Positions 22,124 to 63,586 of a stretch of DNA of 64,000 bases are shown one piece after another. This DNA is from Anaeramoeba ignava BMAN. Its lineage: Eukaryota > Protista > Anaeramoebae. Made by a program: the position numbers and the translations under genes. How positions within the stretch are numbered: position 1 is the first letter of the stretch; each line of letters opens with the position of its first letter. The notes beneath the pieces were generated by a model. That model saw nothing but the letters and a program-made list of their open reading frames with translations, was not told the DNA's origin and searched no databases. The stretch covers positions 186,001 through 250,000 of the forward strand of contig JAPDFW010000136.1 in NCBI GenBank assembly GCA_028826165.1, in the 5' to 3' direction.

Positions 22124-22353
22124 TTGATTGATTCTTTCTTTATAATTTTTATTTTTAATTTAATTTTTAATTTATTTTTTAATTTATTTTTTGCTTTATT
22201 TTTTTTACCTATTAAAAATTAAGTGGAAAAGAAAAAAATGAAAAATTAATAAAAAATTAAAAAAAAATTAAAAAAAGAAAAAAAATTTTTTTTTCATTTT
22301 TTTTTCTCCTTTTTCTTTTTTTTTCTCCTTTCTTTAATAATAACTAAAATAAA

Positions 22354-40573: not shown

Positions 40574-40654
40574 TCCAAGTTTATTTTTTCTTTTTTTTAT
40601 TTTGATTTTAATTTTGATTTTAATTTTGATTTAAATTTTAATTTTAATTTTTAA

Positions 40655-40956
40655 ATTAATAAATCAAATAAATTTGGATTTGTTTGATTTAATTGAAAAT
40701 AATCAATTCCAATTTCAATTTCATTAATGATTTCTTGTGTAATTTGAATTTCTTCTTAAATTTGATTTGAATAAATCCAATATTCAAATATTTGAAATGA
40801 TTTATTACTTAATTCACTATAATCTGTAACTTTATTAGAAGTATCATTTGTTACAGATAAAAACATTCCTCGATATAATTCACTTCTCATTATTAATATT
40901 AATTTAGGAAATTTATATTGTTTTTCTTTTCTTTCAATTATAAAATATTTTTCATT
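40655..40956 (-). pseudogene. 3' fragment of an RCC1-BTB gene with an in-frame stop
   Basis: Encodes ..FIIERKEKQYKFPKLILIMRSELYRGMFLSV..IDYFQLNQTNPNLFDLLI with ATT TAA at ~40757; no upstream gene body. Confidence 0.85.
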
Positions 40957-42069
40957 AATTTATTTCCAAAATGGAATAAAGAATATTAAATAACTAAATT
41001 TAAAATTAATTATATTTTATATATTTTATTAATATTTCTTTATTTAAAATAATATAAAATTATTCTCAATAATTTAATAAAATTAATAAAATATTTTCAT
41101 TAATTTATTTCAAAAATGGAATAAAGAATAATTAAATTTAAAATAATTAAATTTAAAAAATTAAAATTATTCCCAATATAAAATCTTTTTCATTTTTATT
41201 TTAATATTTCTTTATTTAAAATAATATAAAATTATTCTCAATAATTTAATAAAATTTGAAAAGAAAAATTGAAATATTTTAATAAAGATAAATATTTATT
41301 TTTAATAATATTTAACAATAATTTAATCTAAATTTATTTTATTTTTAATTTGAAATAATATTTTTATTTATTATATTAATATTTTTGATTATTTATTATT
41401 CCAATTTTAATTATAATAAAATATATTAAAAATTGGAATAAATATTTTAATAAAGATAAATATTTATTTTTAATAATATTTAATAATAATTTATTTTAAA
41501 TTTATTTTATTTTAATCTGAAATAATGTTTTTATTTATTATATTAATATTTTTAATTATTTATTATTCCAATTTTAATTATAATAAAATATATTAAAAAT
41601 AAAATTAAAAAATTAAAAAATTTTAAATAAATTGAATTTAACATGATTGAATAAGATAAACTTTCTAAAAAAAATAATTTACTAATTATTCTATTTTTGA
41701 TTTTGATTATAATTCATTAATATTTAAATATTAATTAATAATAAATTTTATTTGATTTTTTTTATTTTAATATTTTAATTAATGAATTTAAATTTAATTA
41801 TTATTAATTTCTATTTTCAATTTTTATTTTTATTTATATTATTAAAAATATTCAATTTTTAAAATTTATTATTTTTTTTTTGGATTATTTTTTATTAATT
41901 AAATTTTTAATAAATATTTTAAATTAAAATTAAATTATTTAAAATTAAATTTGTTTCTTATTTATTATTTTAAAGAAATTAATTTGATTAAAAGTAAATT
42001 AAAATTGAATTAAATTTTGAAAAAAAAAATTAAAAAAAAAAGTTTGATTTTCTTATTATTAATTAATTT

Positions 42070-43714
42070 TTAAATGAAATAAGTTTCAACTTCATCAACA
42101 ACCCATTTATCATAAGAACCAGCTAAATAACTTTTAGCTTCATTTGTATCATAAGTAATTCCATTAGGTAGATTATAACTATAACCAAAATTTGACCAAC
42201 CAGTTTGTAAATTAGAATTAATTCCAAAATCAGCTCCATAATAATCACCAAACATTGGACCATTACTTAAACCAGAATAAATTGCATATTGAGGTTCTTT
42301 ACAAGTAAACTTTGCAGGTATTCTATCCCCTTTATCATTTCTTAATGAAAAAATAAATGCATTTGAATCATTAATGTTTCTTGTATTTCCATTAAATCCA
42401 ACTTTAGTAAAACCTCCAAAAATAAAATTATCTTTTGTTTTGATAATAACTAATGTTTTTCCTTTCCCATCAACTGCTTTATGCCAATTTTGAGAATTAA
42501 ATCCATCTCTTTTTGCTGAAAATCCTTTTTTCATTTTAGAAAAAAAATCATTATCATTTATCCATTCTTGTAATTTCTTAGCATATTCAATCTCTTTAAT
42601 AATTTCTGAATCTGAAAAAATCTTTTGTAATTCCATTAATTCAAATTTGGATTTAAGTTCTTCAACTTCTTTCTTCCATTTATCTTCAATTTCTTTGTTT
42701 TTATTTTCAATTTCCTTCTCTTTATTCTCAACTTCTTTCTTCCATTTCTCTTCAATTTCTTTCTTCCATTTCTCTTCAATTTCCTTTTCTTTGTTTTCAA
42801 TTTCTTTATTTTTATCTTCAATTTCCTTCTCTTTGTTTTCAATTTCTTTTTGATTATCTTGAATAACTTTGTTTTGAATATCAACTAAAAAAGAATTAGG
42901 AAAAAAATCAAATTGTTTTAATTTATCGAAATCTTGTTTTGAAATTGAATCTTTATCAAATAATGAAAAAAAAGAATGAAATAATCTTTTCTTTTCAATT
43001 CCCTTTTCTTTTTCTTTTTCTTTTTCTTTCTTTCCTTTTAATCTTTGATTTCTTTTTTCAATCCAATTATTTAAAAATTGAAAAAAATCAAATTGAAAAA
43101 TTTCTTTTTTTTCTTGTTTAAATTGAATAAATTTGATAATTTCTTCTTTAGTTAAATTGAATAAATTCTCATTATTTTGAATTTGGGAAAAATTTTGATT
43201 TATTAATTCAAAACATTTTATTTCAATTTCATTTGAATTTAAATTTCGATTTTGGAATAAAAATTGGAAAAATTTGAATAATTAATTGAATTTGAAATTT
43301 TTTTTGAATAATTTCTTTCAATAAATTTAATTTAAAATAAATTGAAATTTCCAATAATTGGATAAGATTTTCTTGATTCTCAAAAGGAATATTTCCATAA
43401 TAAATATAACTCAAAATTGATTCCATTTCTTTTTTATTAAATTGATTTAAAGAAATAGAAAGAGATTCTTGCCTTAATGACTCATTAAAAAAAGGAGATC
43501 TTGAAGATAAAATTGATTTATGAACTTTAATTTCAAAAGGATTTGATTTATTCTCAACAAAAATTGAAAAATCTTTAAATGAATTTCCATTTAAAAGGTT
43601 TGAATAATCTTTAATTAAATTTTTTGTTACTTTTTTTTCTAAATTTTTCATTTCATTTTCATTTTGATTTTGATTTGCATTTTCAATTTGGTTATTATTA
43701 TTATTATTATCCAT
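42070..43714 (-). CDS. BTB/POZ-(BACK-like)-coiled-coil-TLDc protein, copy A (homopolymer frameshifts ~43270-43305)
   Basis: DFSIFV..EIKVHKSILSSRSPFF (BTB); FSAKRDGF..WHKAVDGKGKTLVIIKT..IFGGFT..AFIFSL..GPMFG..EVETY (TLDc). Confidence 0.85.
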
Positions 43715-44119
43715 TTTGTGTTTTTTGTTTTTTGTTTTTTGTGTTTTTTGTTTTTTTGTGTTTTTAAAAAAAAAGGAAAAAAATGAAAAAAAAAATTTAA
43801 AAAAAATATGAATAAAAAAAGTGGATTTTGAAAATAAATAAAAATACAAAAAATAAGAATAAATTTAAATTAATAATTAATTTAATTTTCTTTTTAATTT
43901 ATTATTTTAAATTAATTTATTAATAAATTATTATTATTTTTTATTAATTTTTTTTATTAAAAAAAAAGGAAAATTATTTTAATTTAATTTTTAATTTAAT
44001 TTTTTTTTTGGAATTTAAAAATTATTAATAAATTTAAATTTTAAAACAAATTTCTAAATTAATATTAATTCAATTTAATTCAAAAATATAAAATTTTAAT
44101 TTCAAAAATCAATTTTCAA

Positions 44120-44960
44120 AATATTTTTAAATAATAAAATATTTAAATCTAAAACATTAAATTATTATTTTAATAATAAAATTAAATATTAAATTATATT
44201 TTTAAATTAATTTATAAATTAAATATTAAATTAAATCTATTCTTATTTTTATATTTATATTTTAAATATTTAAAATAACAAAATATTTAAATCTAAAACA
44301 ATAAATTATTATTTTAAACATGAAATTAAATATTAAATTATATTTTTAAATTAATTTTATAAATTAAATATTAAATTAAACCTATTTTCATTTTTATATT
44401 TATATTTTAAATATTTAAATAACAAAATATTTAAATCTAAAACAATAAATTATTATTTTAATAATGGAATTAAATATTAAATTATATTTTTAAATTAATT
44501 TATAAATTAAATATTAAATTAAATCTATTCTTATTTTTATATTTATATGTTAAATATTTAAATAATAAAATATTTAAATCTAAAACATTAAATTATTATT
44601 TTAATAATAAAATTAAATATTAAATTATATTTTTAAATTAATTTTTAAATTAAATATTAAATTAAATCTGTTCTCATTTTTATATTTATATGTTTAATAT
44701 TTAAATAATAAAATATTTTAAATCTAAAACAATAAATTATTATTTTAATAATAAAATTAAATATTAAATTATATTTTTAAATTAATTTATAAATTGAATA
44801 TTAAATTAAATTTATTCTCATTTTTTATATTTATATGTTAAATATTTAAATAATAAAATATTTAACTCTAAAACAATAAATTATTATTTTAATTTTGAAT
44901 TTAATTTTAATTATATTTTTAAATTAATTTATAAATTAAATATTAAATTAAACTTGTTCT
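44120..44960. repeat. ~144-bp minisatellite, 6 copies
   Basis: TCTAAAACA anchor at 44148, 44292, 44436, 44579, 44723, 44867. Confidence 0.9.
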
Positions 44961-44968
44961 CATTTTCT

Positions 44969-45298
44969 TTATTGATTTTGATTATTAAATTTTTTAATTA
45001 ATAAATCAAATAAATTTGGATTTGTTTGATTTAATTGAAAATAATCAATTCCTCCTTCTAAGTCATCAATAATTTCTTGTGTAATTTGAATTTCTTCTTT
45101 AATTTGATTTGAATAAATCCAATATTCAAATATTTGAAATGATTTATTACTTAATTCACTATAATCTGTAACTTTATTAGATTTATCTTCTGTTACAGAT
45201 AAAAACATTCCTCGATATAATTCACTTCTCATTATTAATATTAATTTAGGAAATTTATATTGTTTTTCTTTTCTTTCAATTATAAAATCTTTTTCATT
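44969..45298 (-). pseudogene. Second 3' fragment of an RCC1-BTB gene
   Basis: Nearly identical to 49447-49776 and truncated at the same point as the 40655 fragment. Confidence 0.85.
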
Positions 45299-45865
45299 AA
45301 TTTATTTCAAAAATGGAATAAAGAATATTAAATAATTAAATTTAAAATTAATTATATTTTATATATTTTATTAATATTTCTTTATTTAAAATAATATAAA
45401 ATAATTCCCAATAATTTAATAAAATTAATAAAATATTTTCATTAATTTATTTCAAAAATGAAATAAAGAATATTAAATAATTAAATTTAAAATTAATTAT
45501 ATTTTATATATTTTATTAATGTTTCTTTATTTAGAATAATATAAAATTATTCTCAATAATTTAATAAAATTAATAAAATATTTTAATTAATTTATTTCAA
45601 AAATAAAATCAAGAATATTAAATAATTAAATTTAAAATTAATTCTATTTTATATATTTTATTAATATTTCTTTATTTAAAATAATATAAAATTATTCCCA
45701 ATAATTTAATAAAATTTATAAAATATTTTAATTAATTTATTTCAAAAATGGAATAAAGAATATTAAATAATTAAATTTAAAATTAATTCTATTTTTATAT
45801 ATTTTATTAATGTTTCTTTATTTAAAATAATATAAAATTATTCCCAATAATTTAATAAAATTGAA
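45299..45865. repeat. 145-bp minisatellite, 4 copies (2 copies at 40957-41255)
   Basis: Anchor at 45313, 45458, 45603, 45748; also 40971 and 41116. Confidence 0.88.
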
Positions 45866-46667
45866 AAGAAAATTGAAATATTTTAATAAATATAAATATT
45901 TATTTTTAATAATATTTAATAATAATTTAATTTAAATTTATTTCATTTTAATCTGAAATAATATTTTTATTTATTATATTAATATTTTTAATTATTTATT
46001 ATTTTAATTTTAATTATAATAAAATATATTAAAAAAGTGGAATAAATATTTTAATAAATATAAATATTTAATTTTAATAATATTTAATAATAATTTAATC
46101 TAAATTTATTTCATTTTAATTTGATATAATATTTTTATTTATTATATTAATATTTTTAATTATTTATTATTCCAATTTTAATTATAATAAAATATATTAA
46201 AAATAAAATTAAAAATTAAAAATTTTAAATAAATTGAATTTAACATGATTGAATAAGATAAACTTTCTAAAAATAATTTACTAATTATTCTATTTTTGAT
46301 TTTGATTATAATTTATTAATATTTAAATATTAATTAATAATAAATTTTATTTGATTTTTATTTTAATATTTTAATTAATGAATTTAAATTTAATTATTAT
46401 TAATTTCTATTTTCAATTTTTATTTTTATTTATTATATTAAAAATATTCAATTTTTTAAAATTTATTATTTTTTTTTTTGGATTATTTTTTATTAATTAA
46501 ATTTTTAATAAATATTTTAAATTAAAATTAAATTATTTAAAATTAAATTTGTTTTTTATTTATTATTTTAAAGAAATTAATTTGATTAAAAGTAAATTAA
46601 AATTGAATTAAATTTTGAAAAAAAAAATTAAAAAAAAAAGTTTGATTTTCTTATTATTAATTAATTT

Positions 46668-48360
46668 TTAAATGAAATAAGATTCAAGTTCATCAACAAC
46701 CCATTTATTAGGAGAACCAGCTAAATAACTTTTAGCTTCATTTGTTCCTTCTTTAATTCCATTAGGTAGATTATAACTACAACCAAAATTTGACCAACCA
46801 GTTTGTAAATCAGAATTAATTCCAAAATCAGCTCCATTACCAAAAACTGGACCATAACTTAAATAAGAATAAATTGCACGAACTTTGCCATTATATGTAA
46901 ACTTTGCAGGTATTCTATCCCCTTTATCATTTCTTAATGAAAAAATAAATGCATTTGAATCATTAATGTTTCTTGTATTTCCATTAAATCCAACTTGAGT
47001 AAAACCTCCAAAAATAAAATTATCTTTTGTTTTGATAATAACTAATGTTTTTCCTTTCCCATCAACTGCTTTATGCCAATTTTGAGAATCAAATCCATCT
47101 CTTTTTGCTGAAAATCCTTTTTTCATTTTAGAAAAAAAATCATTATCATTTATCCATTCTTGTAATTTATTAACATATTCAATATCTTTAATAATTTCTG
47201 AATCTGAAAATTGAGGAAAATTCTTTCTTAATTCAATCTCCATTTGATATTGATCAAAAATAGGTTTCATTTTCTCATTCTCTTCTTTCATTTTCTCAAC
47301 TTCTTTGTTTTTATCTTCAATTTCTTTGTTTTTATCTTCAATTTCCTTTTCTTTGTTTTCAACTTCTTTCTTCCATTTCTCTTCAATTTCAATTTTCATT
47401 TGTTGATTTTCTTTCTCTTTATCTTCAACTTCTTTCTTCCATTTCTCTTCAATTTCCTTCTCTTTCTTTTCAATTTCTTTTTGATTATCTTGAATAACTT
47501 TGTTTTGAATATCAACTAAAAAAGATTTAGGAAAAAAATCAAATTGTTTTAATTTATCAAAATCTTGTTTTGAAATTGAATCTTTATCAAATAATGAAAA
47601 AAAAGAATGAAATAATCTTTTCTTTTCAATTCCCTTTTCTTTTTCTTTTTCTTTTTCTTTTTCTTTCTTTCCTTTTAATCTTTGATTTCTTTTTTCAATC
47701 CAATTATTTAAAAATTGAAAAAAATCAAATTGAAAAATTTCTTTTTTTTCTTGTTTAAATTGAATAAATTTGATAATTTCTTCTTTAGTTAAATTGAATA
47801 AATTTTCATTATTTTGAATTTGGGAAAAATTTTGATTTATTAATTCAAAACATTTTATTTCAATTTCATTTGAATTTAAATTTCGATTTTGGAATAAAAA
47901 TTGGAAAAAATTTGAATAATTAATTGAATTTGAAATTTTTTTTTGAATAATTTCTTTCAATAAATCTAATTTAAAATAAATTGAAATTTCCAATAATTGG
48001 AGAAGATTTTCTTGATTCTCAAAAAGAAATATTTCCATAATAAATATAACTCAAAATTGATTCCATTTCTTTTTATTAAATTGATTTAAAAAGAAATAGA
48101 AAGAGATTCTTGCCTTAATGACTCATTAAAAAAGGAGATCTTGAAGATAAAATTGATTTATGAACTTTAATTTCAAAAGGATTTGATTTATTCTCAACAA
48201 AAATTGAAAAATCTTTAAATGAATTTCCATTTAAAAGGTTTGAATAATCTTTAATTAAATTTTTTGTTACTTTTTTTTCTAAATTTTTCATTTCATTTTC
48301 ATTTTCATTTTGATTTTGATTTGCATTTTCAATTTGGTTATTATTATTATTATTATCCAT
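46668..48360 (-). CDS. BTB/POZ-coiled-coil-TLDc protein, copy B (frameshifts ~48040-48135)
   Basis: Paralog of 42070-43714; ORFs 48115-48360 and 46668-48038 join when homopolymers are corrected against copy A. Confidence 0.85.
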
Positions 48361-48739
48361 TTTGTTTTTGTTTTTGTGTTTTGTTTTTGTTTTTAAAAAG
48401 GAAAAATGAAAAAAAAATGAAAAATGAATAAAAAAAGTGGATTTTGAAAATAAATAAAAATATAAAAAATGAGAATAAATTTAAATTAATAATTAATTTA
48501 ATTTTCTTTTTAATTTATTATTTTAAATTAATTTATTAATAAATTATTATTATTTTTATTAATTTTTATTATTAAAAAAAAAGGAAAATTATTTTAATTT
48601 AATTTTTAATTTAATTTTTTTTTTTGGAATTTAAAAATTATTAATAAATTTAAATTTTAAAAACAAATTTCCAAATTAATATTAATTCAATTTAATTCAA
48701 AAAGATAAAATTTTAATTTCAAAAATCAATTTTCAAAAT

Positions 48740-49440
48740 ATGTTTAAATAATAAAATATTTAAATCTAAAACATTAAATTATTATTTTAATAATAAAATT
48801 AAATATTAAATTATATTTTTAAATTAATTTATAAATTAAATATTTAAATTAAACTTATTCTTATTTTTATATTTATATGTTTAAATATTTAAATAATAAA
48901 ATATTTAAATCTAAAACAATAAATTATTATTTTAATAATAAAATTAAATATTAAATTATATTTTTAAATTAATTTTTAAATTAAATATTAAATTAAACCT
49001 ATTCTTCATTTTTATATTTTATGTTAAATATTTAAATAATAAAATATTTAAATCTAAAACATTAAATTATTATTTTAATAATAAAAATTAAATATTAAAT
49101 TATATTTTTAAATTAATTTATAAATTAAATATTAAATTAAATTTATTCTCATTTTTTATATTTATATGTTTAATATTTAAATAATAAAATATTTAAATCT
49201 AAAACAATAAATTATTATTTTAATAATAAAATTAAATATTAAATTATATTTTTAAATTAATTTATAAATTGAATATTAAATTAAATTTATTCTCATTTTT
49301 TATATTTATATGTTTAATATTTAAATAATAAAATATTTAAATCTAAAACATTAAATTATTATTTTAAATAACAAAATTAAATATTAAATTATATTTTTAA
49401 ATTAATTTATAAATTAAATATTAAATTAAACTTGTTCTCA
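48740..49440. repeat. ~144-bp minisatellite, 5 copies
   Basis: Anchor at 48765, 48910, 49053, 49198, 49342. Confidence 0.9.
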
Positions 49441-49446
49441 TTTTCT

Positions 49447-51213
49447 TTATTGATTTTGATTATTAAATTTTTTAATTAATAAATCAAATAAATTTGGATT
49501 TGTTTGATTTAATTGAAAATAATCAATTCCTGTTTCTAAGTCATCAATAATTTCTTGTATAATTTGAATCCCATTTTTAATTTGATTTGAATAAATCCAA
49601 TATTCTAATATTTGAAATGATTTATTACTTAATTCACTATAATCTGTAACTTTATTAGAAGTATCTTCTGTTACAGATAAAAACATTCCTCGATATAATT
49701 CACTTCTCATTATTAATATTAATTTAGGAAATTTATATTGTTTTTCTTTTCTTTCAATTATAAAATCTTTTTCATTTTCATTTTCATTTTCATTTAAATA
49801 AATTCTTTTCATTGTTTCTTCAATTTTTTCATTTGAATTTATAATTTCTTTGATTTCTGAATATAATTTTGGATTTATTTTGAATTTGTTTGAATAAATC
49901 ATTTCAAATATTTGATTTGATTCTTTAATTGATTTTTTTGAAATAATTTCTTGAAGTTTTTCAATTTGATTTTGATCTTTTAATCTATATTTCAATATTA
50001 ATTTATGAGCTTTGATTATTTCTCCATTTTCGGTTTTAAATGAAATATCACAAAATTCTTTTCTTTCAAATAATTTTATCAAATCTTCTTCAAGATTGGA
50101 AAAAGAAGAAGGAGAATAATAAAGAAATGAATGATAAGATCCACAATAAAGATGATAATTAGAAATTTCTTCATTAAATCTTAATTTAGGAAGTTCAATT
50201 TGAATTGGAATTCTTTGCGTTTCTGTATCTTCAGTTCCTAATTGACCATGAGAGTTATTTCCAAATCCTATCATTTTTGAATTAGAAGTTAAAATCAAAG
50301 TATGATTGTCTCCAACAGAAAAATCAAGAATATTATCATCATTTTCAAATAAAGATGATTTGACTTCAGTAAATTCATAAGTATTTTCATCTTTGCCAAG
50401 TCCATTAAATTGAGAATAACCACATGAATAAAGTTTTCTTTTTGGATTTTCATTTTCAATCAACATTATTGAATGATAATAACTAGTTTGAATATCAATT
50501 ATTTTGCCTTTTGGAATATTTTGGATTTTGGTTAATTTTTTGATATATGTTTCTTTTCTTGATTCTCCTAATCCAATTTGACCGTTTCCATTATATCCGC
50601 ATCCAAATAATTCTTGATTTAAATTTAAAAGAAAAACATGAAATGAATTGTTTCCTGAAAATATTTTAGAAACATTTTTCATCATTAAAATTGGTTTTTC
50701 TGTTTTTTTAAGTGTTTCAGAATCAAATCCAAGTTGACCATAAGAGTTTGAACCAATTCCATAAGCATTTTGATTTGAAGTTAATAAATAAATTGAACTA
50801 GCTCCAGAAACAATATCTTCAATTATTCTATCATTTTTATCTTCAATTAATGATGAAATATTAATAAATTGATTTGGATTATTTGGATTAATATTATTTC
50901 CTTTTGCAAATACATTTCCTTCTATTGTTAAAATAGCTTCATTTCCATAATTACCAAAAGTTACTTTTTGAATATTTTCAATTTGAATTTTTTCAGGATT
51001 TTGATTTGAGTCTTCTGAAGATTCAAATAGTTTCCCATTTTCAAAAAGGAAAAATACTGATGAATTTGATGATAGAATTTGTTTAATTTGTTTTTCATTT
51101 TCATTTTCATTTTCATTTTCAAATTTAAATTGAGTTGGTTTTGTTATTTTTTCTGGTTCATTTTCTAAAAGTTTTGGAGATGCATTGTGACCAAAAAATA
51201 AAATTTCATTCAT
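49447..51213 (-). CDS. RCC1-repeat beta-propeller plus tandem BTB protein, copy 1
   Basis: RCC1 repeats G.N..GQLG, VGDNHTLIL; BTB FCDISF..IKAHKLIL; second BTB-like KDFII..RSELYRGMF. Confidence 0.9.
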   Translation of the reverse strand: MNEILFFGHNASPKLLENEPEKITKPTQFKFENENENENEKQIKQILSSNSSVFFLFENGKLFESSEDSNQNPEKIQIENIQKVTFGNYGNEAILTIEGNVFAKGNNINPNNPNQFINISSLIEDKNDRIIEDIVSGASSIYLLTSNQNAYGIGSNSYGQLGFDSETLKKTEKPILMMKNVSKIFSGNNSFHVFLLNLNQELFGCGYNGNGQIGLGESRKETYIKKLTKIQNIPKGKIIDIQTSYYHSIMLIENENPKRKLYSCGYSQFNGLGKDENTYEFTEVKSSLFENDDNILDFSVGDNHTLILTSNSKMIGFGNNSHGQLGTEDTETQRIPIQIELPKLRFNEEISNYHLYCGSYHSFLYYSPSSFSNLEEDLIKLFERKEFCDISFKTENGEIIKAHKLILKYRLKDQNQIEKLQEIISKKSIKESNQIFEMIYSNKFKINPKLYSEIKEIINSNEKIEETMKRIYLNENENENEKDFIIERKEKQYKFPKLILIMRSELYRGMFLSVTEDTSNKVTDYSELSNKSFQILEYWIYSNQIKNGIQIIQEIIDDLETGIDYFQLNQTNPNLFDLLIKKFNNQNQ

Positions 51214-51239
51214 TTTTAAAATGAAAAAAATGAAAAAAA

Positions 51240-51717
51240 TGATTTTTAATTTTGATTTTAATTTTAATTTTAATTTTAATTTTAATTTTAATTTTAATTT
51301 TAATTTTAATTTTGATTTTAATTTTAATTTTAATTTTAATTTTAATTTTAATTTTAATTTTAATTTTAATTTTAATTTAAATTTTAATTTTAATTTTAAT
51401 TTTGATTTTAATTTTAATTTTAATTTTTGATTTTAATTTTAATTTTAATTTTAATTTTAATTTTAATTTTAATTTTAATTTAAATTTTGATTTTAATTTT
51501 AATTTTTAATTTTAATTTTAATTTAAATTTTAATTTTAATTTTAATTTAAATTTTAATTTAATTTAATTTTAATTTTAATTTTGATTTTAATTTTAATTT
51601 TAATTTTAATTTTTATTTTTAATTTTTTGATTTTAATTTTGATTATTATTTTTAATTTTAATTTTAATTTAAATTTTAATTTTAATTTTAATTTAAATTT
51701 TAATTTTGATTTTAATT
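51240..51717. repeat. (TTTTAA)n intergenic microsatellite
   Basis: Direct tandem repeat. Confidence 0.9.
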
Positions 51718-53493
51718 TTAATTTTGATTATTAAATTTTTTAATTAATAAATCAAATAAATTTGGATTTGTTTGATTTAATTGAAAATAATCAATTCCTG
51801 TTTCTAAGTCATCAATGATTTCTTGTGTAATTTGAATTCCATTTTTAATTTGATTTGAATAAATCCAATATTCTAATATTTGAAATGATTTATTACTTAA
51901 TTCACTATAATCTGTAACTTTATTAGAAGTATCTTCTGTTACAGATAAAAACATTCCTCGATATAATTCACTTCTCATTATTAATATTAATTTAGGAAAT
52001 TTATATTGTTTTTCTTTTCTTTCAATAATAAAATCTTTTTCATTTTCATTTTCATTTTCATTTAAATAAATTCTTTTCATTGTTTCTTCAATTTTTTCAT
52101 TTGAATTTATAATTTCTTTAATTTCATAATATAATTTTGGATTTATTATTCTGTTTGAATAAATCATTTCAAATATTTGATTTGATTCTTTAATTGATTT
52201 TTTTGAAATAATTTCTTGAAGTTTTTCAATTTGATTTTGATCTTTTAATCTGTATTTCAATATTAATTTATGAGCTTTGATTATTTCTCCATTTTTGGTT
52301 TTAAATGAAATATTACAAAATTCTTTTCTTCTAAATAATTTTATCAAATCTTCTTCAAGATTGGAAAAGGAAGGAGGGGAATAATAAAGAAATGAGTTTT
52401 CATCTCCACAAGAAATATGATAATTATAAATATCTTCATTAAATCTTAATTTAGGAAGTTCAATTTGAATTGGAATTGGTTGCTCTTTTGTATTTCCAGT
52501 TCCTAATTGACCACAATCATTACCTCCAAATCCAATTAATTTTGAATTAGAAGTTAAAATCAAAGTATGTTGATATCCAACAGAAAAATCAAGAATATAA
52601 TCATTTTCAAATAAAGATGATTTGATTTCAGTAAATTCATCAATATTTTCATCTTCACCTTTGCCAAGTCCATTATATCCATAATATCCACATGAATAAA
52701 ATTTTCTTTTTTCATCTCCATCTTCAATCAACATTATTGATTGGGAATTTCCACATTGAATATCAATTATTTTGCCTTTTGGAATATTTTGGATCTTGGT
52801 TAATTTTTGTATTTTTGATTCTTCTTTTCTTGATTCTCCTAATCCAAGTTGGCCATAATTATTCCAGCCACAACAAAATAATTCTTGATTTGAATTTAAA
52901 AGAAAAACATGATATGAAATAATTCCTGAAAATATTTTAGAAACATTTTTCATCATTAAAATTGGTTTTTCTGTTTTTTGAAGTTTTTTAGGATCAAAAC
53001 CAAGTTGACAATTTCCATTTGAACCAATTCCATAAACATTTTGATTTGAAGTTAATAAGTAAATTGACTGAGCAGAACAAGCAATATCTTGAATTATTCT
53101 ATCATTTGTATCTTCAATTAATGATGAAATATTGATAAATTCATTTGATTTTTTTGAATTAATATTTATCCCTTTTGCAAATACATTTCCTTCTATTGTT
53201 AAAATAGCTTCATTTCGAAAACTAACAGTTACTTTTTGAATATTTTCTTCAATTTGGATTTTTTCAGGATCTGGATTTATATCTCTGGAATATGGATCAT
53301 TTAAATATTCTATTGCTTTTCCATTTTTAAAAAGGAAAATTGTTGCAAATAAACCTGATGAAATTTGTTTAATTTGTTTTTCATTTTCATTTTCATTTTC
53401 AAATTTAAATTGAATTGGTTTTTTTATTGAATCTGGTTTATTTGGGAAAAATTGTGGATCTTGATTATCACCAAAAAATAAAATTTCATTCAT
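51718..53493 (-). CDS. RCC1-repeat plus tandem BTB protein, copy 2
   Basis: Colinear paralog of copy 1; intact 591-aa ORF. Confidence 0.9.
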   Translation of the reverse strand: MNEILFFGDNQDPQFFPNKPDSIKKPIQFKFENENENEKQIKQISSGLFATIFLFKNGKAIEYLNDPYSRDINPDPEKIQIEENIQKVTVSFRNEAILTIEGNVFAKGININSKKSNEFINISSLIEDTNDRIIQDIACSAQSIYLLTSNQNVYGIGSNGNCQLGFDPKKLQKTEKPILMMKNVSKIFSGIISYHVFLLNSNQELFCCGWNNYGQLGLGESRKEESKIQKLTKIQNIPKGKIIDIQCGNSQSIMLIEDGDEKRKFYSCGYYGYNGLGKGEDENIDEFTEIKSSLFENDYILDFSVGYQHTLILTSNSKLIGFGGNDCGQLGTGNTKEQPIPIQIELPKLRFNEDIYNYHISCGDENSFLYYSPPSFSNLEEDLIKLFRRKEFCNISFKTKNGEIIKAHKLILKYRLKDQNQIEKLQEIISKKSIKESNQIFEMIYSNRIINPKLYYEIKEIINSNEKIEETMKRIYLNENENENEKDFIIERKEKQYKFPKLILIMRSELYRGMFLSVTEDTSNKVTDYSELSNKSFQILEYWIYSNQIKNGIQITQEIIDDLETGIDYFQLNQTNPNLFDLLIKKFNNQN

Positions 53494-53535
53494 TTTTGAA
53501 ATGAAAAAAAATGAAAAAAAATGAAAAAATGAATT
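53494..53535 (-). promoter_or_regulatory. Tandem initiator-like TCATTTTT motifs (representative site)
   Basis: Four TCATTTTT units on the coding strand just before the ATG; the same pattern precedes most genes in the window. Confidence 0.5.
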
Positions 53536-53553
53536 TTGGTTTTAATTGTTTTT

Positions 53554-56500
53554 TTAAATATTTTTTAATGTTTTCTTTCCAAAATTTTGAATTTCTTGAT
53601 TTTTTGGAAAACGTTTTAAAGCTTGTTTAATGCATTCATTTCCTTTAGATCTTCTTATTCCCATTTTATTCTCTAATTTATTTGAATTTTAAATTTTGAA
53701 TTTTGAATTTAAATTTAATTTTGATTTTGATTTTGATTTTTGATTTTTACCTTTATTTAAAGAAATATGATATAAAATTAAACATCCAAATTTTTGGATT
53801 AATTCAGAATTTGGGAAATTATTCATTGTTTTAATTATAATTTCAATTCCATTTAATTCAATAATTTCAATTCCATCCAATTCAATAATTTCATTTCTGT
53901 TTAATTGAATAATTTTGTTCTTGTTTTCTGTTTTATTTTGTTTTTTGTTTTATGAGAATTAATAAGTTCAAAATAAAAATAATAAAATAATAAAAATCAT
54001 TTTACCTTTGTTATCAATTAAATTTGATAAAGATTCAAATGCTTTAATTTGGATATTTTGATTTGTTGGGAAATTAATAATTGCTTTTATAATTGTTTCA
54101 ATTCCATTTATTTCTCCAATTTGAATTTTAATTTCTGTTTTTAATTTTTGATTTAAGTATTAATATTGATTTAAATATTAATATTGATTTATATTTTACC
54201 ATTATCATTAGAAATATTAGATAAAATTTCAAATCCTTTATTTTGAATATTTTCATTTGTTGAGAAATTAATCATTGCTTGAATAACTGCTTCAATTCCA
54301 TTTAATTCTTTTATTGCGTTTTTAATTTCTATTTTTATATATTTATAAATTAAATATTTAGATTTAAATATTTATTGATTGATTTATATTTTACCATTAT
54401 CATTAGAAAGAATAGATAAAATTTCTAATGTTTTATTTTGAATATTTTCTTTTGTTGGGAAATTAATCATTGATTGAATAATTGCTTCAATTCCATTGAT
54501 TTTTTTTATTGTGCTTTTAATTTCTATTTTTATATTTATAAATTAAATATTTATATTTGAATTAATTATGTTTGATTAATATTTTACCCTTATTATCTAA
54601 AATATTCATTAAAACTTTAAATCCTTGATTTTGAATATTTTTATTTGTTGGGAAATTAATCATTGCTTTTATAATCATTTCAATTCCATTTAATTCTAAA
54701 ATTTTAATTTTCTTAACTATTGTTTTATTGTTATTATTATTATTAATAATAATTTGTTTTTTGTTTGAATTATAATTTTATAATTTACATTTATCATTAG
54801 AAATAATAGATAAAAATCCACATCCTTGATTTTGAATATTTTGATTTTTTGAGAAATTAATCATTGCTTTTATAATCATTTCAATTCCATTTAATTCTAG
54901 AATTTTATCTAAATTCACTAATAATATTTTTTTTTTTTGATTTTGAAAAAAGAAAGAAGAAATGAATATGATTAATAATATTTGTTTTATAATATTTATT
55001 TATGGATATAATTTACTTGAGTTTTTAGAAAAATTAAATAAAGCTTCAAATGCTTTTTCTTGAATTTGTTCATTATTTGAGAAATTAATCATTGCTTTAA
55101 TAACTGGTTCAATTCCATTTATATTTTTTAAGTAATAGGCATTATCTAATAATTATAAAATCAAAAATTAAAAATAAAATTTTGTTTTTGAAGATATTTT
55201 TGTGTTTTTTTTATTGATAAATAAATTACTAATATTAGTTGTAATATTTGATAAAATTCCACATCCATAATTTTGAATTTCTTCATTATTTGGAAAGTTA
55301 TTCATTGCTGCTATAATTTGATGAGAAACTTCATTTATGATCTTGTTTTGATTTTCTTTAAAGTTAATTAAATAATAAAATATTTTTGGAATAAATATAA
55401 GAATAAAGAAAAAATAAAATAAGATAAAAGTGGATTATGAAATGATAAATATCAAAATAATTTAATATTTTCAAATTATTTTTATTTTACCTTTATCAGT
55501 TGAAAGATTATAAACGGTTTTAAGTCCAAATTTTTGAATTTCTTCATTTTCATACCAACTATTCATTGCGTTACGAATTTGACTAATTCCATCTAATTCT
55601 CTAATTTTGATTTTATTTTCTATTTTTTTGGAAAGAAATTTAAAATCAATTTTGTTTTTAGATTTAATAAAAAAGATATAAAATAAATTAAAATCAATAA
55701 AAGAAAATAAAATAAATTGTTTATTCTTTTTATTATTTACCTTCATCTAAAGAAAAATTTGATAAAGCTTTACATATATTATAATAGATTTCTTGAGTAT
55801 AAAATACAGATTTTGTTAGATTTATTATTATTATTTCAATTCCATTTAATTCTTCAATTTTGATTCTGTTTTCTATTTTAATTTAATTAAATTTTGGATT
55901 AAAATTAATGGAAAATAATTTGTTTTATTTTGATTTCTCTCATTTATTTAATTTAATTAATAATTATTTACCTTTATTAAAAGAAAGATTTGTTAAAGCT
56001 TCACATCCATTAAATTGAATATCTCTATCATTTGGGAAATTAATCATTGATTTGATAATTGGTTCAATTCCATTTAATTCTCTAATTTGAATTTTGTTTT
56101 CTATTTTTGTTTTTTTAATTAATATTTTTTGATATAAATTTAATTAATAATAATTTACCATCATTAATAGAAATATTTGTTAAAACTTTACATCCACTAT
56201 TTTGAATATATTCATCATTTGGGAAATTAATCATTGATTGAATAATTGGTTCAATTCCATTTAATTCTTTAATTTGGATTTTGTTTTCTATTTTTGTTTA
56301 TTTTTCAAAAACAAGAAAAGTTTAATTTTTGATTTTTGATTTTTGGATTTTTTGATTTTTGGATTTTGATTTAGATTGAAAATGTTTAATAATAATTTAC
56401 CTTCATTAATAGAAATATTTGTTAAAGCTTCACATCCATTAAATTGAATATCTCTATTATTTGGGAAATTAATCATTGATTGAATAATTGGTTCAATTCC

Positions 56501-58403
56501 ATTTAATTCTTTAATTTGGATTTTGTTTTCTATTTTTGTTTATTAATTAATATTTTTGATATAAATTTAATTTAATTAATAATAATAATTTACCATCATT
56601 AATAGAAATATTTGATAAAACTTTACATCCACTATTTTGAATATCTTTATCATTTGGGAAATTAATCATTGATTGAATAATTGGTTCAATTCCATTTAAT
56701 TCTTTAATTTTGATTTTGTTTTCTATTTTTGTTTATTTTTCAAAAACAAGAAAAGTTTGATTTTTGGATTTTTGATTTTTGATTTTTGGATTTTTGGATT
56801 TTGATTTAGATTGAAAATGTTTAATAATAATTTACCTTTATTAATAGAAATATTTGTTAAAGCTTCACATCCATTAAATTGAATATCTCTATTATTTGGG
56901 AAATTAATCATTGATTGAATAATTGGTTCAATTCCATTTAATTCTTTAATTTTGATTTTGTTTTCTATTTTTGTTTATTTATTTAGTTAATTAATATTTT
57001 TTGATATAAATTTAATTTAATTAATAATAATAATTTACCATCATTAATAGAAATATTTGTTAAAACTTTACATCCACTATTTTGAATATATTCATCATTT
57101 GGGAAATTAATCATTGATTGAATAATTGGTTCAATTCCATTTAATTCTTTAATTTTGATTTTGTTTTCTAATTTTGTTTATTTTTCAAAAACAAGAAAAG
57201 TTTGATTTTTGATTTTTGATTTTTGATTTTTGATTGAATTATTATCAAATCTTTTATTTTTATGTTTTATTCTTGATTATTTACTTTCATTATGAGAAAT
57301 ATTAAATAAACTATCACAACTTTCAGATTGAATATTTGAATCTTTTTGAAACTTATTCATTGAATTAATTATTGGCTTAATTCCTTTTAATTTTCTAATT
57401 TCAATTTGATTTTCTATTTGTAATTTTTTTTTTGAGGAGAAAATAAATATTAAATTGATTATTTCTTTTGATTTATTTTTTTTTTTATTTACCATTATTT
57501 AAAGCAAGATTATTTAAGCATCTAATTCCTTGAAATTGAATATCTCTATTATTTGGAAAATTAATAATTGATTTAATAATTGGTTCAATTCCTTTCATTT
57601 CTTTAATTTCAATTTGATTTTCTATTTGTAATTTTTTTATTCAATTTAATTAAATTTAATTCAATTTTAATTTAATTTGGAAAATTGAAATTAAAATGGA
57701 AATTAAAATATTACGAGAATCAAAAGCAATATTAGCTAAAATTGAAATTGATTTTTCTTGAATAATTTGATTATTTGGAAAATTATTAATTGCTTTAAGA
57801 ATAAATAAAATTCCTTGATATTTTGCAATTTCAATTCCTTTTAATTTTTGGATTTCTTTATTTTTATTTTTTTAAATTAGTTTTGAATTTTGAATTAAAT
57901 TAAATTAAAAATAATATTATTTTACCTTCATTTTTTGTTGAAATTTTTTCTAAAATAAAACATCCATTTTCTTGAATTTTTTCATTTTTTGGAAATTGAT
58001 TAATTAAATTTATAATTTCTTCAATTGAAATTAATTCTAAATTATTTATATTTATAATATATTTAAATTTATTTAAATTTATTTATTTAGAAAGAATTTT
58101 TAAATAAATAAAATAAGAATAATAAAAATTTACTTTCATTTTCATTTTCATTTTGATTTTCATTTAAAAATGATTTTAAAAAGTTTTCTGCTTTTTTTTC
58201 TGTTTCTGGTTTTGTATTTTGATTATTATTATAATTATCAATATTATTGTTATAATTATTTTGAATTATATTGAATAAATTTTGTTGAAGTTCTTTAATT
58301 TGTTTATCTTTTTCATCCATTCTTTTTGAAGTTCATTAATTTGATTATCTTTTTCATTCATTCTTTTTGAAGTTCATTAATTTGATTTTTGAATTTGTTC
58401 CAT
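53554..58403 (-). CDS. 22-exon armadillo-repeat protein: N-terminal coiled coil plus 21 exons of about one repeat each
   Basis: Exons 58403-58134 (homopolymer frameshifts), 58036-57926, 57855-57715, 57621-57493, 57413-57285, 57167-57039, 56964-56836, 56722-56594, 56529-56401, 56287-56159, 56100-55972, 55872-55741, 55619-55491, 55355-55230, 55145-55017, 54917-54789, 54716-54588, 54523-54395, 54328-54200, 54134-54006, 53927-53751, 53672-53554. Consensus ENKI.I.EL.GIE.II..M.NFP.N..IQ..G...L.NIS is ARM-like. Confidence 0.85.
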
Positions 58404-58689
58404 TTTGAATTAAATTCAAATTAAAAATAAAAATAAAAATAATAGAAAATAACCTTTTTTTTGGATTAATTTTAAAATAAAATAAATTATTTTGAATAAA
58501 TAAATTAAATTATAAAAGAATTTAAAGAAAATGTTTTTTTATTTTGATTTATTTTTTTTATAATGAAAAAGGAAGAAAAATAATTACTTTTTCTTTTTAT
58601 TAACTTTTTTAAAAAAGGAAAGGAAAAAATGAAAAAATGAATTTTTGGAAAAGTTTTTTGATAAATAAATAAAAATAAATTTGGATTTT

Positions 58690-59185
58690 GTTTTTGATTT
58701 TAATTTTAATTTTAATTATAATTTTAATTTTAATTTTAATTTTGATTTTGATTTTGATTTTAATTTTAATTTTAATTTTAATTTTAATTTTAATTTTAAT
58801 TTTAATTTTGATTTTGATTTTAATTTTAATTTTAATTTTAATTTTAATTTTAATTTTAATTTTAATTTTAATTTTAATTTTAATTTTAATTTTAATTTTA
58901 ATTTTAATTTTAATTTTAATTTTGATTTTAATTTTAATTTTAATTTTGATTTTGATTTTTAATTTAAATTTTAATTTTAATTTTAATTTTGATTTTAATT
59001 TTTTTAATTTTAATTTTGATTTTAATTTTAATTTTAATTTTGATTTTAATTTTAATTTTAATTTTAATTTTAATTTTAATTTTAATTTTAATTTGGATTT
59101 TGTTTTTGATTTTAATTTTAATTTTAATTTTAATTTTGATTTTTGATTATTAAATTTTTAATTTAAATTTAAATTTTAATTTTAA
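58690..59185. repeat. (TTTTAA/TTTTGA)n intergenic microsatellite
   Basis: Direct tandem repeat. Confidence 0.9.
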
Positions 59186-60967
59186 TTTTTAAATTTGTTA
59201 ATTAATAAATCAAATAAATTTGGATTTGTTTGATTTAATTGAAAATAATCAATTCCAATTTGAATTTCATCAATTATTTCTTGTGTAATTTGAATTTCAT
59301 CTTTAATTTGATTTGAATAAATCCAATATTCAAATATTTGAAATGATTTATTACTTAATTCACTATAATCTGTAACTTTTATTTGATTTATCATTTGTTA
59401 CAGATAAAAACATTCCTCGATATAATTCACTTCTCATTATTAATATTAATTTTGGAAATTTATATTGTTTTTCTTTTTTTTCAATAATAAAATCTTTTTC
59501 ATTTTCATTTTCATTTTCATTTAAATAAATTCTTTTCATTGTTTCTTCAATTTTTTCATTTAAATTTATAATTTCTTTAATTTCTAAATATAATATTGGA
59601 TTTATCTTTCTGTTTGAATAAATCATTTCAAATATTTGATTTGATTCTTTAATTGATTTTTTTGAAATAATTTCTTTAAGTTTTTCAATTTCATTTTCAT
59701 TTTGATTTAATCTATATTTCAATATTAAATTATGAGCTTCAATTATTTCTCCATTTTTGGTTTTAAATGAAATATCACAAAATTCTTTTCTTCTAAATAA
59801 TTTTATCAAATCTTCTTCAAGATTGGAAAAAGAAAGAGGAGAATAATAAAGAAATGATTTATCATATCCACAAGAAAGATGATAATTAGAAATATCTTCA
59901 TTAAATCTTAATTTAGGAAGTTCAATTTGAATTGGGATTAATTGATTATTTGTATCTCCAGTTCCTAATTGACCATATTCATTATGTCCAAATCCAATTA
60001 ATTTTGAATTTGAAGTTAAAATCAAAGTAGATTCATCTCCAACAGAAAAATCAAGAATATTATCATCATTTTCAAATAAAGATGATTTGATTTCAGTAAA
60101 TTCATAAGTATTTTCATTTTTGCCAAGTCCATTACATTCATAATACCCAGATGAATAAAGTTTTCTTTTTGGATTTTCATTTTCATTTTCATTTTCAATC
60201 AACATTATTGAATGAAAATTTCCAGATTGAATATCAATTATTTTGCCTTTTGGAATATTTTGGATTTTGGTTAATTTTTTGGGTTTGTCTTTTTTTGATT
60301 CTCCTAATCCAAGTTGACCATATGTATTATATCCGCATACAAATAATTCTTGATTTGAATTTAAAAGAAAAATTCGATGTGAAGTATTTCCTGAAAATAT
60401 TTTAGAAACATTTTTCATCATTAAAATTGGTTTTTTTGTTTTTTTAAGTATTTCAGAATCAAAACCAAGTTGACCAAATTGATTTGAACCAATTCCATAA
60501 ACATTTTGATTTGAAGTTAATAAATAAATTGAAAAGATTCCAGAAACAATATCTTGAATTATTCTATCATTTGTATCTTCAATTAATGATGAAATATTGA
60601 TAAATTCATTTGGATTAATATATCTTCCTTTAGCAAATACATTTCCTTCTTTTGTTAAAATAGCTTCATTTTCCCAACCAACAGTTACTTTTTGAATATT
60701 TTCAATTTGGATTTTTGAAGGATTTTGATTTGGATTTTCATTTAAATCATTTTCATTTAGATATTCTATTGCTTTTCCATTTTTAAAAAGGAAAATTGTT
60801 GAAAAATCACTTGATGAAATTTGTTTAATTTGTTTTTCATTTTCATTTTCATTTTCATTTTCATTTTCATTTTCAAATTTAAATTGAATTGGTTTTGTTA
60901 TTTGATTTGGTTCATTTTTGATAAATTTTGGATATTCATTTCTTCCAAAAAATAAAATTTCATTCAT
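59182..60967 (-). CDS. RCC1-repeat plus tandem BTB protein, copy 3 (one-base frameshift ~59380)
   Basis: ORFs 59363-60967 and 59182-59394 join if the extra T in GTAACTTTTA (paralogs have GTAACTTTA) is removed. Confidence 0.88.
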
Positions 60968-61069
60968 TTTCTTTTTTTATTTTATAATTTTATAATTTTT
61001 TTTGAAAAGAAAAAAATGAAAAAAAATGAAAAAAATAAAAATTTTTTAATTTTAATTTTGAATAAAAAC

Positions 61070-63586
61070 TTAAACATAAACTTGTTTAATATCTGAAATT
61101 TTGGCAGGTTTTTTACAAGTTGGACATTTTTGTTTTCTTTGAACATAAGATTCAATACATTTTCTACAAAAAGTATGAGGACATACTTTTAAAGTACAAA
61201 TTTCTGTTTTTGGATTTCCACAAATGTCACATTTGTTTTTTTGTTCGTCTTCTTCTTTTTCTTTTATTTTCATTTTTTTTGCTTCTTTATATTTTGTTTC
61301 ATCTTCTTCTATTATTTTTTTTACTTCTTTTCGGATTTGTTCAATTTCTTCAATTATTTCAAAATCTCTTTGAATAACTTGACTAAATTATATTTTTTAA
61401 TTAAATTATATTTTGAAAATAAATTATATTTTGAAATTAAATTATATTTTGTAATTAAATTATATTTTATAATTAAATTATATTTTATAATTAAATTATA
61501 TTTTGAAATTAAATTATATTTTGAAATTAAATTATATTTTGAAATTAAATTATATTTTTAAATTAAATTATATTTTGAAATTAAATTATATTTTTAAATT
61601 AAATTATATTTTGTAATTAAATTATATTTTTGGAATTAAATTATATTTTATAATTAAATCATATTTTGTAATTAAATTATATTTTTGGAATTAAATTATA
61701 TTTTTAAATTAAATTATATTTTTGAAATTAAATCATATTTTGTAATTAAATTATATTTTGAAATTAAATTATATTTTGTAATTAAATTATATTTTGTAAT
61801 TAAATTATATTTTGAAATTAAATTATATTTTGTAATTAAATTATATTTTATAATTAAAATATATTTTGGAATTAAATTATATTTTGTAATTAAATTATAT
61901 TTTGGAATTAAATTATATTTTGTAATTAAATTATATTTTTAAATTAAATTATATTTTGTAATTAAATTATATTTTTAAATTAAATTATATTTTTGTAATT
62001 AAATTATATTTTGTAATTAAATTATATTTTTAAATTAAATTATATTTTGTAATTAAATTATATTTTGGAATTAAATTATATTTTGAAATTAAAATATATT
62101 TTTGTAATTAAATTATATTTTATAATTAAAATATATTTTGGAATTAAATTATATTTTATAATTAAATTATATTTTTAATTAAATTATATTTTTGTAATTA
62201 AATTATATTTTGTAATTAAATTATATTTTGTAATTAAATTATATTTTTTAAATTAAATTATATTTTTAAATTAAATTATATTTTGTGAATTAAATTATAT
62301 TTTGTAATTAAATTATATTTTGGAATTAAATTATATTTTGGAATTAAATTATATTTTGAAATTAAATTATATTTTTAAATTAAATTATATTTTGTAATTA
62401 AATTATATTTTTAAATTAAATTATATTTTGTAATTAAATTATATTTTTAATTAAATTATATTTTGTAATTAAATTATATTTTTGTAATTAAATTATATTT
62501 TGGAATTAAATTATATTTTGGAATTAAATTATATTTTTGAAATTAAATTATATTTTGTAATTAAATTATATTTTTGTAATTAAAATTATATTTTGAAATT
62601 AAATTATATTTTGGAATTAAATTATATTTTGTAATTAAATTATATTTTGAAATTAAATTATATTTTTGTAATTAAATTATATTTTTAAATTAAAATATAT
62701 TTTTAAATTAAATTATATTTTGCAATTAAATTATATTTTTAAATTAAATTATATTTTGAAATTAAATTATATTTTGAAATTAAATTATATTTTGTAATTA
62801 AATTATATTTTTAAATTAAATTATATTTTGTAATTAAATTATATTTTTAAATTAAATTATATTTTTAAATTAAATTATATTTTGTAATTAAATTATATTT
62901 TAAATTAAATTATATTTTTAATTAAATTATATTTTGAAATTAAATTATATTTTTAAATTAAATTATATTTTGTAATTAAATTATATTTTATAATTAAATT
63001 ATATTTTTAAATTAAATTATATTTTGTAATTAAATTATATTTTTAATTAAATTATATTTTTAAATTAAATTATATTTTTGACTAAATTATATTTTGTAAT
63101 TAAATTATATTTTGTAATTAAATTATATTTTGTAATTAAATTATATTTTGAAATTAAATTATATTTTTAAATTAAATTATATTTTTAAATTAAATTATAT
63201 TTTTAAATTAAATTATATTTTGTAATTAAATTATATTTTGTAATTAAATTATATTTTTGTAATTAAATTAAATATTGTAATTAAATTATATTTTGTAATT
63301 AAATTATATTTTGTAATTAAATTATATTTTGTAATTAAATTATATTTTGTAATTAAATTATATTTTGAAATTAAATTATATTTTTAAATTAAATTATATT
63401 TTGGAATTAAATTATATTTTTGAAATTAAATTATATTTTGTAATTAAATTATATTTTGAAATTAAATTATATTTTGTAATTAAATTATATTTTTAAATTA
63501 AATTATATTTTTGTAATTAAATTATATTTTTAAATTAAATTATATTTTTAAATTAAATTATATTTTGTAATTAAAACAAACCTCAT
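61070..63586 (-). CDS. Small C3HC4 RING-finger protein. Coding exons 63586-63582 (ATGAG) and 61382-61070
   Basis: CDIC..CPHTFCRKC..CPTC; ATG AG|GTTTGT ... TTTAG|T CAA GTT ATT gives MSQVIQRDF.. in frame with ORF 61070-61273. Confidence 0.82.
61385..63575. repeat. 18-bp satellite (AATTAAATTATATTTTGT)n making up the 2.2-kb RING gene intron
   Basis: Direct tandem repeat filling 63581-61383. Confidence 0.95.

Follow-up and report, generated by a model that had tools for sequence, protein, structure and literature searches.

A minus-strand gene cluster of Anaeramoeba ignava as a sample of large families joining constant BTB modules, predicted to dock on CUL3, to variable binding modules

Gene content of the cluster and its genome-wide families

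The window analysed here is a stretch of 64,000 nucleotides from the unicellular metamonad Anaeramoeba ignava BMAN (contig JAPDFW010000136.1, positions 186,001 to 250,000 of the forward strand), in which nine elements located from 63586 to 40653 are all encoded on the minus strand. They comprise a small RING gene, three genes encoding an RCC1 propeller followed by two BTB domains (RCC1-BTB-BTB, hereafter RCC1-BTB), an ARM-repeat gene, two genes encoding a BTB-BACK-coiled coil-TLDc protein (hereafter BTB-TLDc) and two fragments of an RCC1-BTB tail (Table 1), and the cluster is bounded by a plus-strand gene for an Arf GTPase. The RCC1-BTB and BTB-TLDc genes probably represent diversifying adaptor families, in which a constant BTB module, predicted to dock on CUL3, is joined to a variable binding module. 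The RCC1-BTB copies recombine, and the BTB-TLDc genes are carried by a dispersed cassette.

Table 1. Elements of the minus-strand cluster, with their positions in the window
Element	Position	Strand	Remarks
Small RING (C3HC4) gene, ca. 105 aa	61070..63586	-	zf-C3HC4, E 1e-7
RING exon 1, 5 nt	63586-63582	-	inferred only
RING exon 2	61382-61070	-	
RCC1-BTB-BTB gene #1	59182..60967	-	one-base frameshift, A run near 59377
ARM-repeat gene, 22 exons	53553..58403	-	one repeat per phase-1 exon; 15 exons of 129 nt
RCC1-BTB-BTB gene #2, 591 aa	51718..53493	-	intact
RCC1-BTB-BTB gene #3, 588 aa	49447..51213	-	intact; seven-bladed propeller and single-chain tandem BTB tail
144-bp AT-rich minisatellite	48760..49430	-	5' flank of BTB-TLDc gene A; part of the cassette
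BTB-BACK-coiled coil-TLDc gene A	46668..48360	-	homopolymer frameshifts in BTB region
RCC1-BTB 3' tail fragment 1, 330 bp	44969..45298	-	second BTB only; fixed 5' breakpoint
144-bp minisatellite	44126..44966	-	5' flank of BTB-TLDc gene B
BTB-BACK-coiled coil-TLDc gene B	42070..43713	-	homopolymer frameshifts
RCC1-BTB tail fragment 2	40653..40952	-	in-frame stop, then the microsatellite usual behind free RCC1-BTB genes
Two tandem cassette copies, ca. 4.4 kb	40936..49483	-	each with satellite, BTB-TLDc gene, AT-rich repeats and tail fragment

A first-pass annotation had described amplification of this cluster at the scale of exons, genes and a 4.4-kb segment. The elements, their common orientation and the three scales of amplification were all found again here, with frameshifts qualifying the integrity of several genes. 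As assembled, RCC1-BTB #2 and #3 are the only intact genes of the cluster, frameshifts being present in RCC1-BTB #1, in both BTB-TLDc genes and in exon 1 of the ARM gene; those that were located (both BTB-TLDc genes and RCC1-BTB #1) all coincide with homopolymer runs and might stem from errors of the assembly. The ARM gene, which starts with a short coiled coil, has undergone recent duplications of two exons (A/B), with 94-99% identity inside the A or the B class, and the two segmental duplicates (40936-44857 and 45568-49483) share 92% identity. The intron of the RING gene is a 2.2-kb minisatellite; this region (61400-63580) was also considered as coding sequence and was rejected on inspection, all frames containing stops.

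Copies were counted across one A. ignava genome (42.8-Mb assembly, with gene models for ca. 14,800 locus tags). It holds 1,259 occurrences of a 30-mer of the RCC1-BTB tail, 1,132 of a 31-mer of the propeller and 390 of a 27-mer of the TLDc domain, the controls giving none. Several cullin genes of this assembly are found in near-identical pairs (C64/C109; two on C57) that are possibly recent duplications or haplotigs, so that the same caution applies to the RCC1-BTB and TLDc counts. On the 1.8-Mb contig C1 alone, RCC1-BTB genes form 21 clusters of one to four genes, ca. one per 85 kb. The ARM and RING models were searched exon by exon. For the ARM exon, at least 150 relatives were scored out of 1,347 candidates, on many contigs, and the RING gene is nearly unique with a single paralogue of 94% identity, located on contig C11 and carrying a stop. 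On these counts, the 23-kb cluster is best described as an ordinary sample of very large families and as one among hundreds of similar arrays, and the earlier view of a distinct, dedicated locus is not supported. Neither is the inclusion of the ARM and RING genes in a diversifying ligase set: a domain search detected neither a BTB nor a RING domain in the window ARM gene, which by domain evidence is thus not itself part of a ligase, and only one close paralogue of the RING gene was found. Birth-and-death turnover, also part of the first-pass annotation, agrees with a large lineage-specific expansion in which stops and fragments occur and for which every named top match is from A. ignava. Four gene models (P0245, P0246, P0248 and P0252) carry ARM repeats of the window type ahead of RCC1-BTB-BTB; three of the four have divergent tails (46-60%) and some of these fusions may be real, P0245 resembling merged neighbours.

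Variable faces, constant tails and selection

Among 114 RCC1-BTB paralogues, identity is 78% in the propeller and 93% in the tail, and all 27 positions with an entropy above 2.5 bits fall in the propeller. The head folds as a seven-bladed RCC1 propeller in which the variable positions fall in two places of each blade, in the turn between strands 1 and 2 and in the loop behind strand 3. Aligned to UVR8, they correspond to its aromatic positions of GWRHT type and of the WG loop, which lie on one face of the propeller. Ca. 30-40 residues assigned to that face are shown to be nearly randomised, the tail being constrained. In 58 BTB-TLDc paralogues, the BTB-BACK region is almost invariant at the protein level, the coiled coil varies in length and ca. 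15 hypervariable positions lie in the C-terminal half of TLDc. The TLDc domains of window copies A and B diverge by 5.4%, compared with 0.7-1.6% for their BTB region and flanks, and differ by 24 non-synonymous codons and one synonymous codon, an excess that may be due to selection, to gene conversion by a further paralogue or to the two together. The conserved BTB domain joined to a hypervariable ligand-binding domain that had been noted in the window is thus a feature of both families. A CaaX prenylation box was further observed at the C-terminus of 19 of 120 RCC1-BTB paralogues (P0001-P0120), the window copies being devoid of it.

Codon site models were self-written, of the GY94 and MG94 type (not codeml), with branch lengths scaled from a DNA tree, and were applied to 47 coding sequences that correspond to the best matches to gene #3 and not to a random sample. 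With a constant synonymous rate (dS), a class of sites with a ratio of non-synonymous to synonymous rates (dN/dS) above 1 improved the fit by 794-1470 (twice the log-likelihood difference, 2dL), and 37-59 sites had a dN/dS >1, of which ca. 90% in the propeller. Pairwise proportions of non-synonymous (pN) and synonymous (pS) differences were 0.51 and 0.23 for the face, against 0.036 and 0.086 for the tail. The dN/dS of the RCC1-BTB tail is 0.11-0.21, and the BTB tails are under purifying selection.

The tree of the RCC1-BTB copies is star-like, and linkage among them does not extend past 10 nt. Simulations run without recombination contain 10-18 times more strong long-range linkage, so that the copies show the linkage pattern of recombining paralogues. 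In their codon alignment, double changes amount to 12-25 for every 100 single ones. Synonymous changes are concentrated in the Gly codon immediately 5' of variable codons and co-occur with a change of the next base (odds ratio 1.9, P 0.014). We propose that paralogues freely exchange sequence and that diversifying selection retains and reshuffles old face variants, which would result in a narrow halo of raised dS around the face codons.

A dispersed cassette and the origin of co-orientation

The 144-bp satellite, the BTB-TLDc gene and the RCC1-BTB tail fragment compose a cassette that is dispersed in the genome. The junction of the tail fragment, with the same breakpoint, was found at 40 genome sites, and 20 of the 27 junctions that could be tested have a same-strand TLDc site 1.5-2.8 kb upstream, the chance of which is ca. 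1.4% for each. On contigs C1, C2, C4 and C7, 10 of 11 TLDc sites are no more than 5 kb from a same-strand RCC1-BTB tail (null mean 0.9), a count to which the tail fragment inside the cassette contributes. At many places, including loci L015 and L023, the satellite separates the 3' end of an RCC1-BTB gene from the start of a BTB-TLDc gene. The same cassette sequence comes after both gene #3 and fragment 1 of the window, and fragment 2 continues into the microsatellite that trails free RCC1-BTB genes. Given these shared junctions and flanks, the two fragments, initially taken for relics of decayed genes, correspond to fixed parts of the cassette.

The upstream junction of the cassette was also considered as fixed and was rejected, with four matches only. 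No ORF (open reading frame) for a transposase, recombinase or reverse transcriptase and no terminal repeats were detected in the cassette or in the region, and the only homology found was to RCC1-BTB tails. The AT-rich repeat preceding the tail fragment also occurs in tandem copies beside a cullin gene (L036:3925-4740, contig C74) and is thus not confined to the cassette.

The cassette may insert into RCC1-BTB 3' ends by homologous recombination via its 330-bp fragment, with a tandem duplication of the inserted cassette in the window, and such insertions would yield mixed, co-oriented arrays. The co-orientation underlined in the first-pass annotation is real; it constitutes weak evidence of a dedicated locus because it follows from tandem duplication and cassette insertion and because only ca. 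4-5 independent units are involved.

Elsewhere in the window, an intronless ORF of 1,428 aa with a raised GC content (35-37%), TPR repeats and a weak match to peptidase C50 (separase/CHAT-like) is located at 12088-16374 on the minus strand. An enolase gene (minus strand) and a gene for a phytase/phosphatase resembling protein tyrosine phosphatases (plus strand) occur at 20675-23220. On the plus strand, a fibronectin type III (FN3) repeat protein (28284-31072) and a protein with an FG-GAP propeller and FN3 (34609-36786), both of raised GC, are probably surface proteins.

Predicted CUL3 docking, alternative readings and known systems

Ca. eight cullin loci (L031-L042) were detected in the genome, and L033 is a CUL3 orthologue with Cullin-3 as best match (428 bits versus 363 for CUL4). 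The RCC1-BTB tail was modelled with a predicted local distance difference test (pLDDT) value of 95 as a single-chain BTB pair that is closest to the tandem BTBs of LZTR1, ABTB1 and RhoBTB3, with template modelling (TM) scores of 0.67-0.78, and its second BTB is nearest in sequence to KBTBD4, SPOP and KBTBD2. The alpha3-beta4 loop of RCC1-BTB reads V/T-x-D, with a conserved Asp where adaptors have hydrophobic-x-Glu, and of 90 diverse tails, 90% or more have an acidic residue at this phi-x-E position. In the BTB-TLDc genes, alignment indicates a BTB-BACK region with a 3-box region. The same BTB tail is also fused to ankyrin, Ras, G-alpha and ARM + RCC1 heads, and 20 of 20 matches looked up were Anaeramoeba proteins. 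The presence of a CUL3 orthologue and of BTB folds closest to CUL3 adaptors supports the initial assignment of a CUL3-type domain.

If the families are read as diversifying CUL3 adaptors, selection would favour new binding faces and the proteins would send what they bind to ubiquitination. The changing targets, which are the least certain step, would be foreign proteins (from prey, symbionts, intracellular bacteria, viruses or selfish elements). Several data weigh against this reading, a part of them concerning the size of the selection signal. In face codons, dS is 4.5-6.5 times background, as compared to 1.1-2.1 in simulations, and within three codons of these it is still ca. 2 times background. 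When local dS is left free, single-hit models give a face dN/dS of 0.5-1.3, and a value of 1.6 (2dL 5.6) is obtained when multi-nucleotide changes are also allowed. This last test is partly circular, the face codons having been defined by motif after their variability was seen, which is not the case of the site models. The non-synonymous excess is strong in the site models with constant dS and in the TLDc pair, and the face dN/dS is 0.5-1.6 with local dS free, among copies that recombine. A face dN/dS of ca. 1.6 is our cautious estimate, and the signal is strong in its pattern and moderate in its size given local dS and recombination. An amplification that is selfish or neutral, in which surface loops would be less constrained and mutate faster locally instead of diversifying adaptively, would account for the raised dS, the double changes, the numerous broken copies and a cassette that spreads with no obvious benefit, in a genus with further extreme expansions (A. 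flamelloides has more than 1,100 genes for ribosomal proteins). It is nevertheless quite improbable, since relative to background the synonymous rate is raised only ca. 2-fold in the flanks, as against 3-6-fold for dN on the face, the variation occupies one face across all seven blades with constant opposite loops, the TLDc pair has 24 non-synonymous to 1 synonymous difference and the tail dN/dS is 0.1-0.2. A retroelement-type mutator was also considered and rejected, neither template nor enzyme having been seen and the flanking synonymous rate being raised ca. twofold only. Least probable of all is a dedicated, co-regulated immune locus of 23 kb in which RING, ARM and BTB genes would work together. 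A second RING, RCC1-BTB, ARM, RCC1-BTB block does exist at C11:4000-15300, with two RCC1-BTB genes separating RING from ARM, and ARM-RCC1-BTB gene models are present elsewhere in the genome, but the RING copy of C11 is interrupted by a stop, arrays of 1-6 RCC1-BTB genes recur ca. every 85 kb (21 clusters on C1) and the minus-strand orientation is accounted for by duplication.

The other data unfavourable to a role as CUL3 adaptors concern docking. One CUL3-like gene alone was identified among the cullin loci, the RCC1-BTB tail has no 3-box, the protein ending at helix 6, its first BTB is truncated and the main BTB-TLDc clade has a deletion of 4-5 residues in the alpha3-beta4 loop. In SPOP, the 3-box raises the affinity for CUL3 ca. 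30-fold (PMC3597819). Considering the CUL3 gene, the adaptor-like BTB folds, the missing 3-box and the shortened loop, docking of BTB tails on CUL3 is likely but unproven. Variable binders working without CUL3, with the tandem BTB merely as a stalk or scaffold, would fit these gaps in RCC1-BTB together with its imperfect phi-x-E loop and the transcription-factor BTB folds found among scoring matches. This is improbable in view of the acidic residue kept at the phi-x-E position, the best sequence matches to KBTBD4, SPOP and KBTBD2, and the BTB-BACK with 3-box region retained in BTB-TLDc. The same adaptors might also act on self proteins that change fast, such as the expanded Rab/Ras GTPases or those regulating V-ATPase at the symbiosome, or on endogenous selfish elements. 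RCC1 folds are known to bind GTPases, LZTR1 to bring about RAS degradation and TLDc domains to associate with V-ATPase, and the fold searches returned PDB matches of this kind; the fusion of the BTB tail to Ras and G-alpha domains and the CaaX box of some paralogues point in the same direction, as does the expansion of Rabs and TBCs in Anaeramoeba (PMC11550330). We regard self targets as unlikely, as a conserved self partner is expected to conserve the face, and as a family of more than 1,000 copies, randomised at the face and shuffled by recombination, far exceeds the needs of a stable set of self targets.

The families look, from their sequences, like an inherited library of recognition proteins, and an immune role would be plausible. 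It is more tentatively that we suggest a germline-encoded recognition system shuffled by recombination, in which antibody-like faces of RCC1, TLDc, ARM and ankyrin modules would feed one CUL3 ligase, destroying bacterial or viral proteins and helping to control symbionts, and in which an enzyme-free TLDc cassette would land on RCC1-BTB tails. How single-celled eukaryotes recognise and control internal bacteria and viruses is largely open, and an anaerobe that bears symbionts and has more than 1,000 nearly identical genes, randomised at their binding face, offers a direct experimental handle: variable residues are mapped on a constant scaffold, making CUL3 binding and targets testable. If this proposal is true, TLDc becomes a variable recognition domain and the families natural scaffolds for binders. 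The main text of the genome paper makes no mention of RCC1, POZ, TLD or ubiquitin, and related PANTHER names appear in its supplements, in tables only. A literature search found no description of the A. ignava RCC1-BTB and BTB-TLDc families and no report of TLDc as a variable recognition domain.

Among known proteins, IBTK and RCBTB combine RCC1 with BTB. A propeller or repeat head followed by a BTB tail, as in A. ignava, occurs in LZTR1, ABTB1, RhoBTB3 and IBTK (tandem BTB) and in RCBTB1/2 (single BTB), but these are single-copy, have conserved targets and carry BACK/3-box helices, whereas the A. ignava tail stops after the second BTB. The BTB-BACK-Kelch adaptors (KLHL11, KEAP1, KBTBD4 and poxvirus A55) align over ca. 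190 residues to the BTB-BACK of the TLDc genes, in which a coiled coil of variable length and a hypervariable TLDc take the place of Kelch and in whose main clade the alpha3-beta4 loop is shortened. UVR8, RCC1 and HERC2 RLD2, the latter binding peptides on one conserved face (PMC13748646), share the propeller fold of RCC1-BTB; the binding-type surface conserved in these proteins is nearly randomised in A. ignava. The overall pattern appears to match that of the F-box (FTH, FBA2) and MATH-BTB families of Caenorhabditis, which, according to the summary of Thomas 2006 in PMC12062965, have alike hundreds of paralogues, birth-and-death turnover and purifying selection on the cullin-docking domain, and in which the substrate domain is under positive selection. 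In comparison, A. ignava is a unicellular metamonad and varies a face of the RCC1 propeller and a patch of TLDc. Its main family is larger, with ca. 1,100 copies, and shows great homogeneity (78% and 93% identity), and the spread of one family takes place as a cassette within the other.

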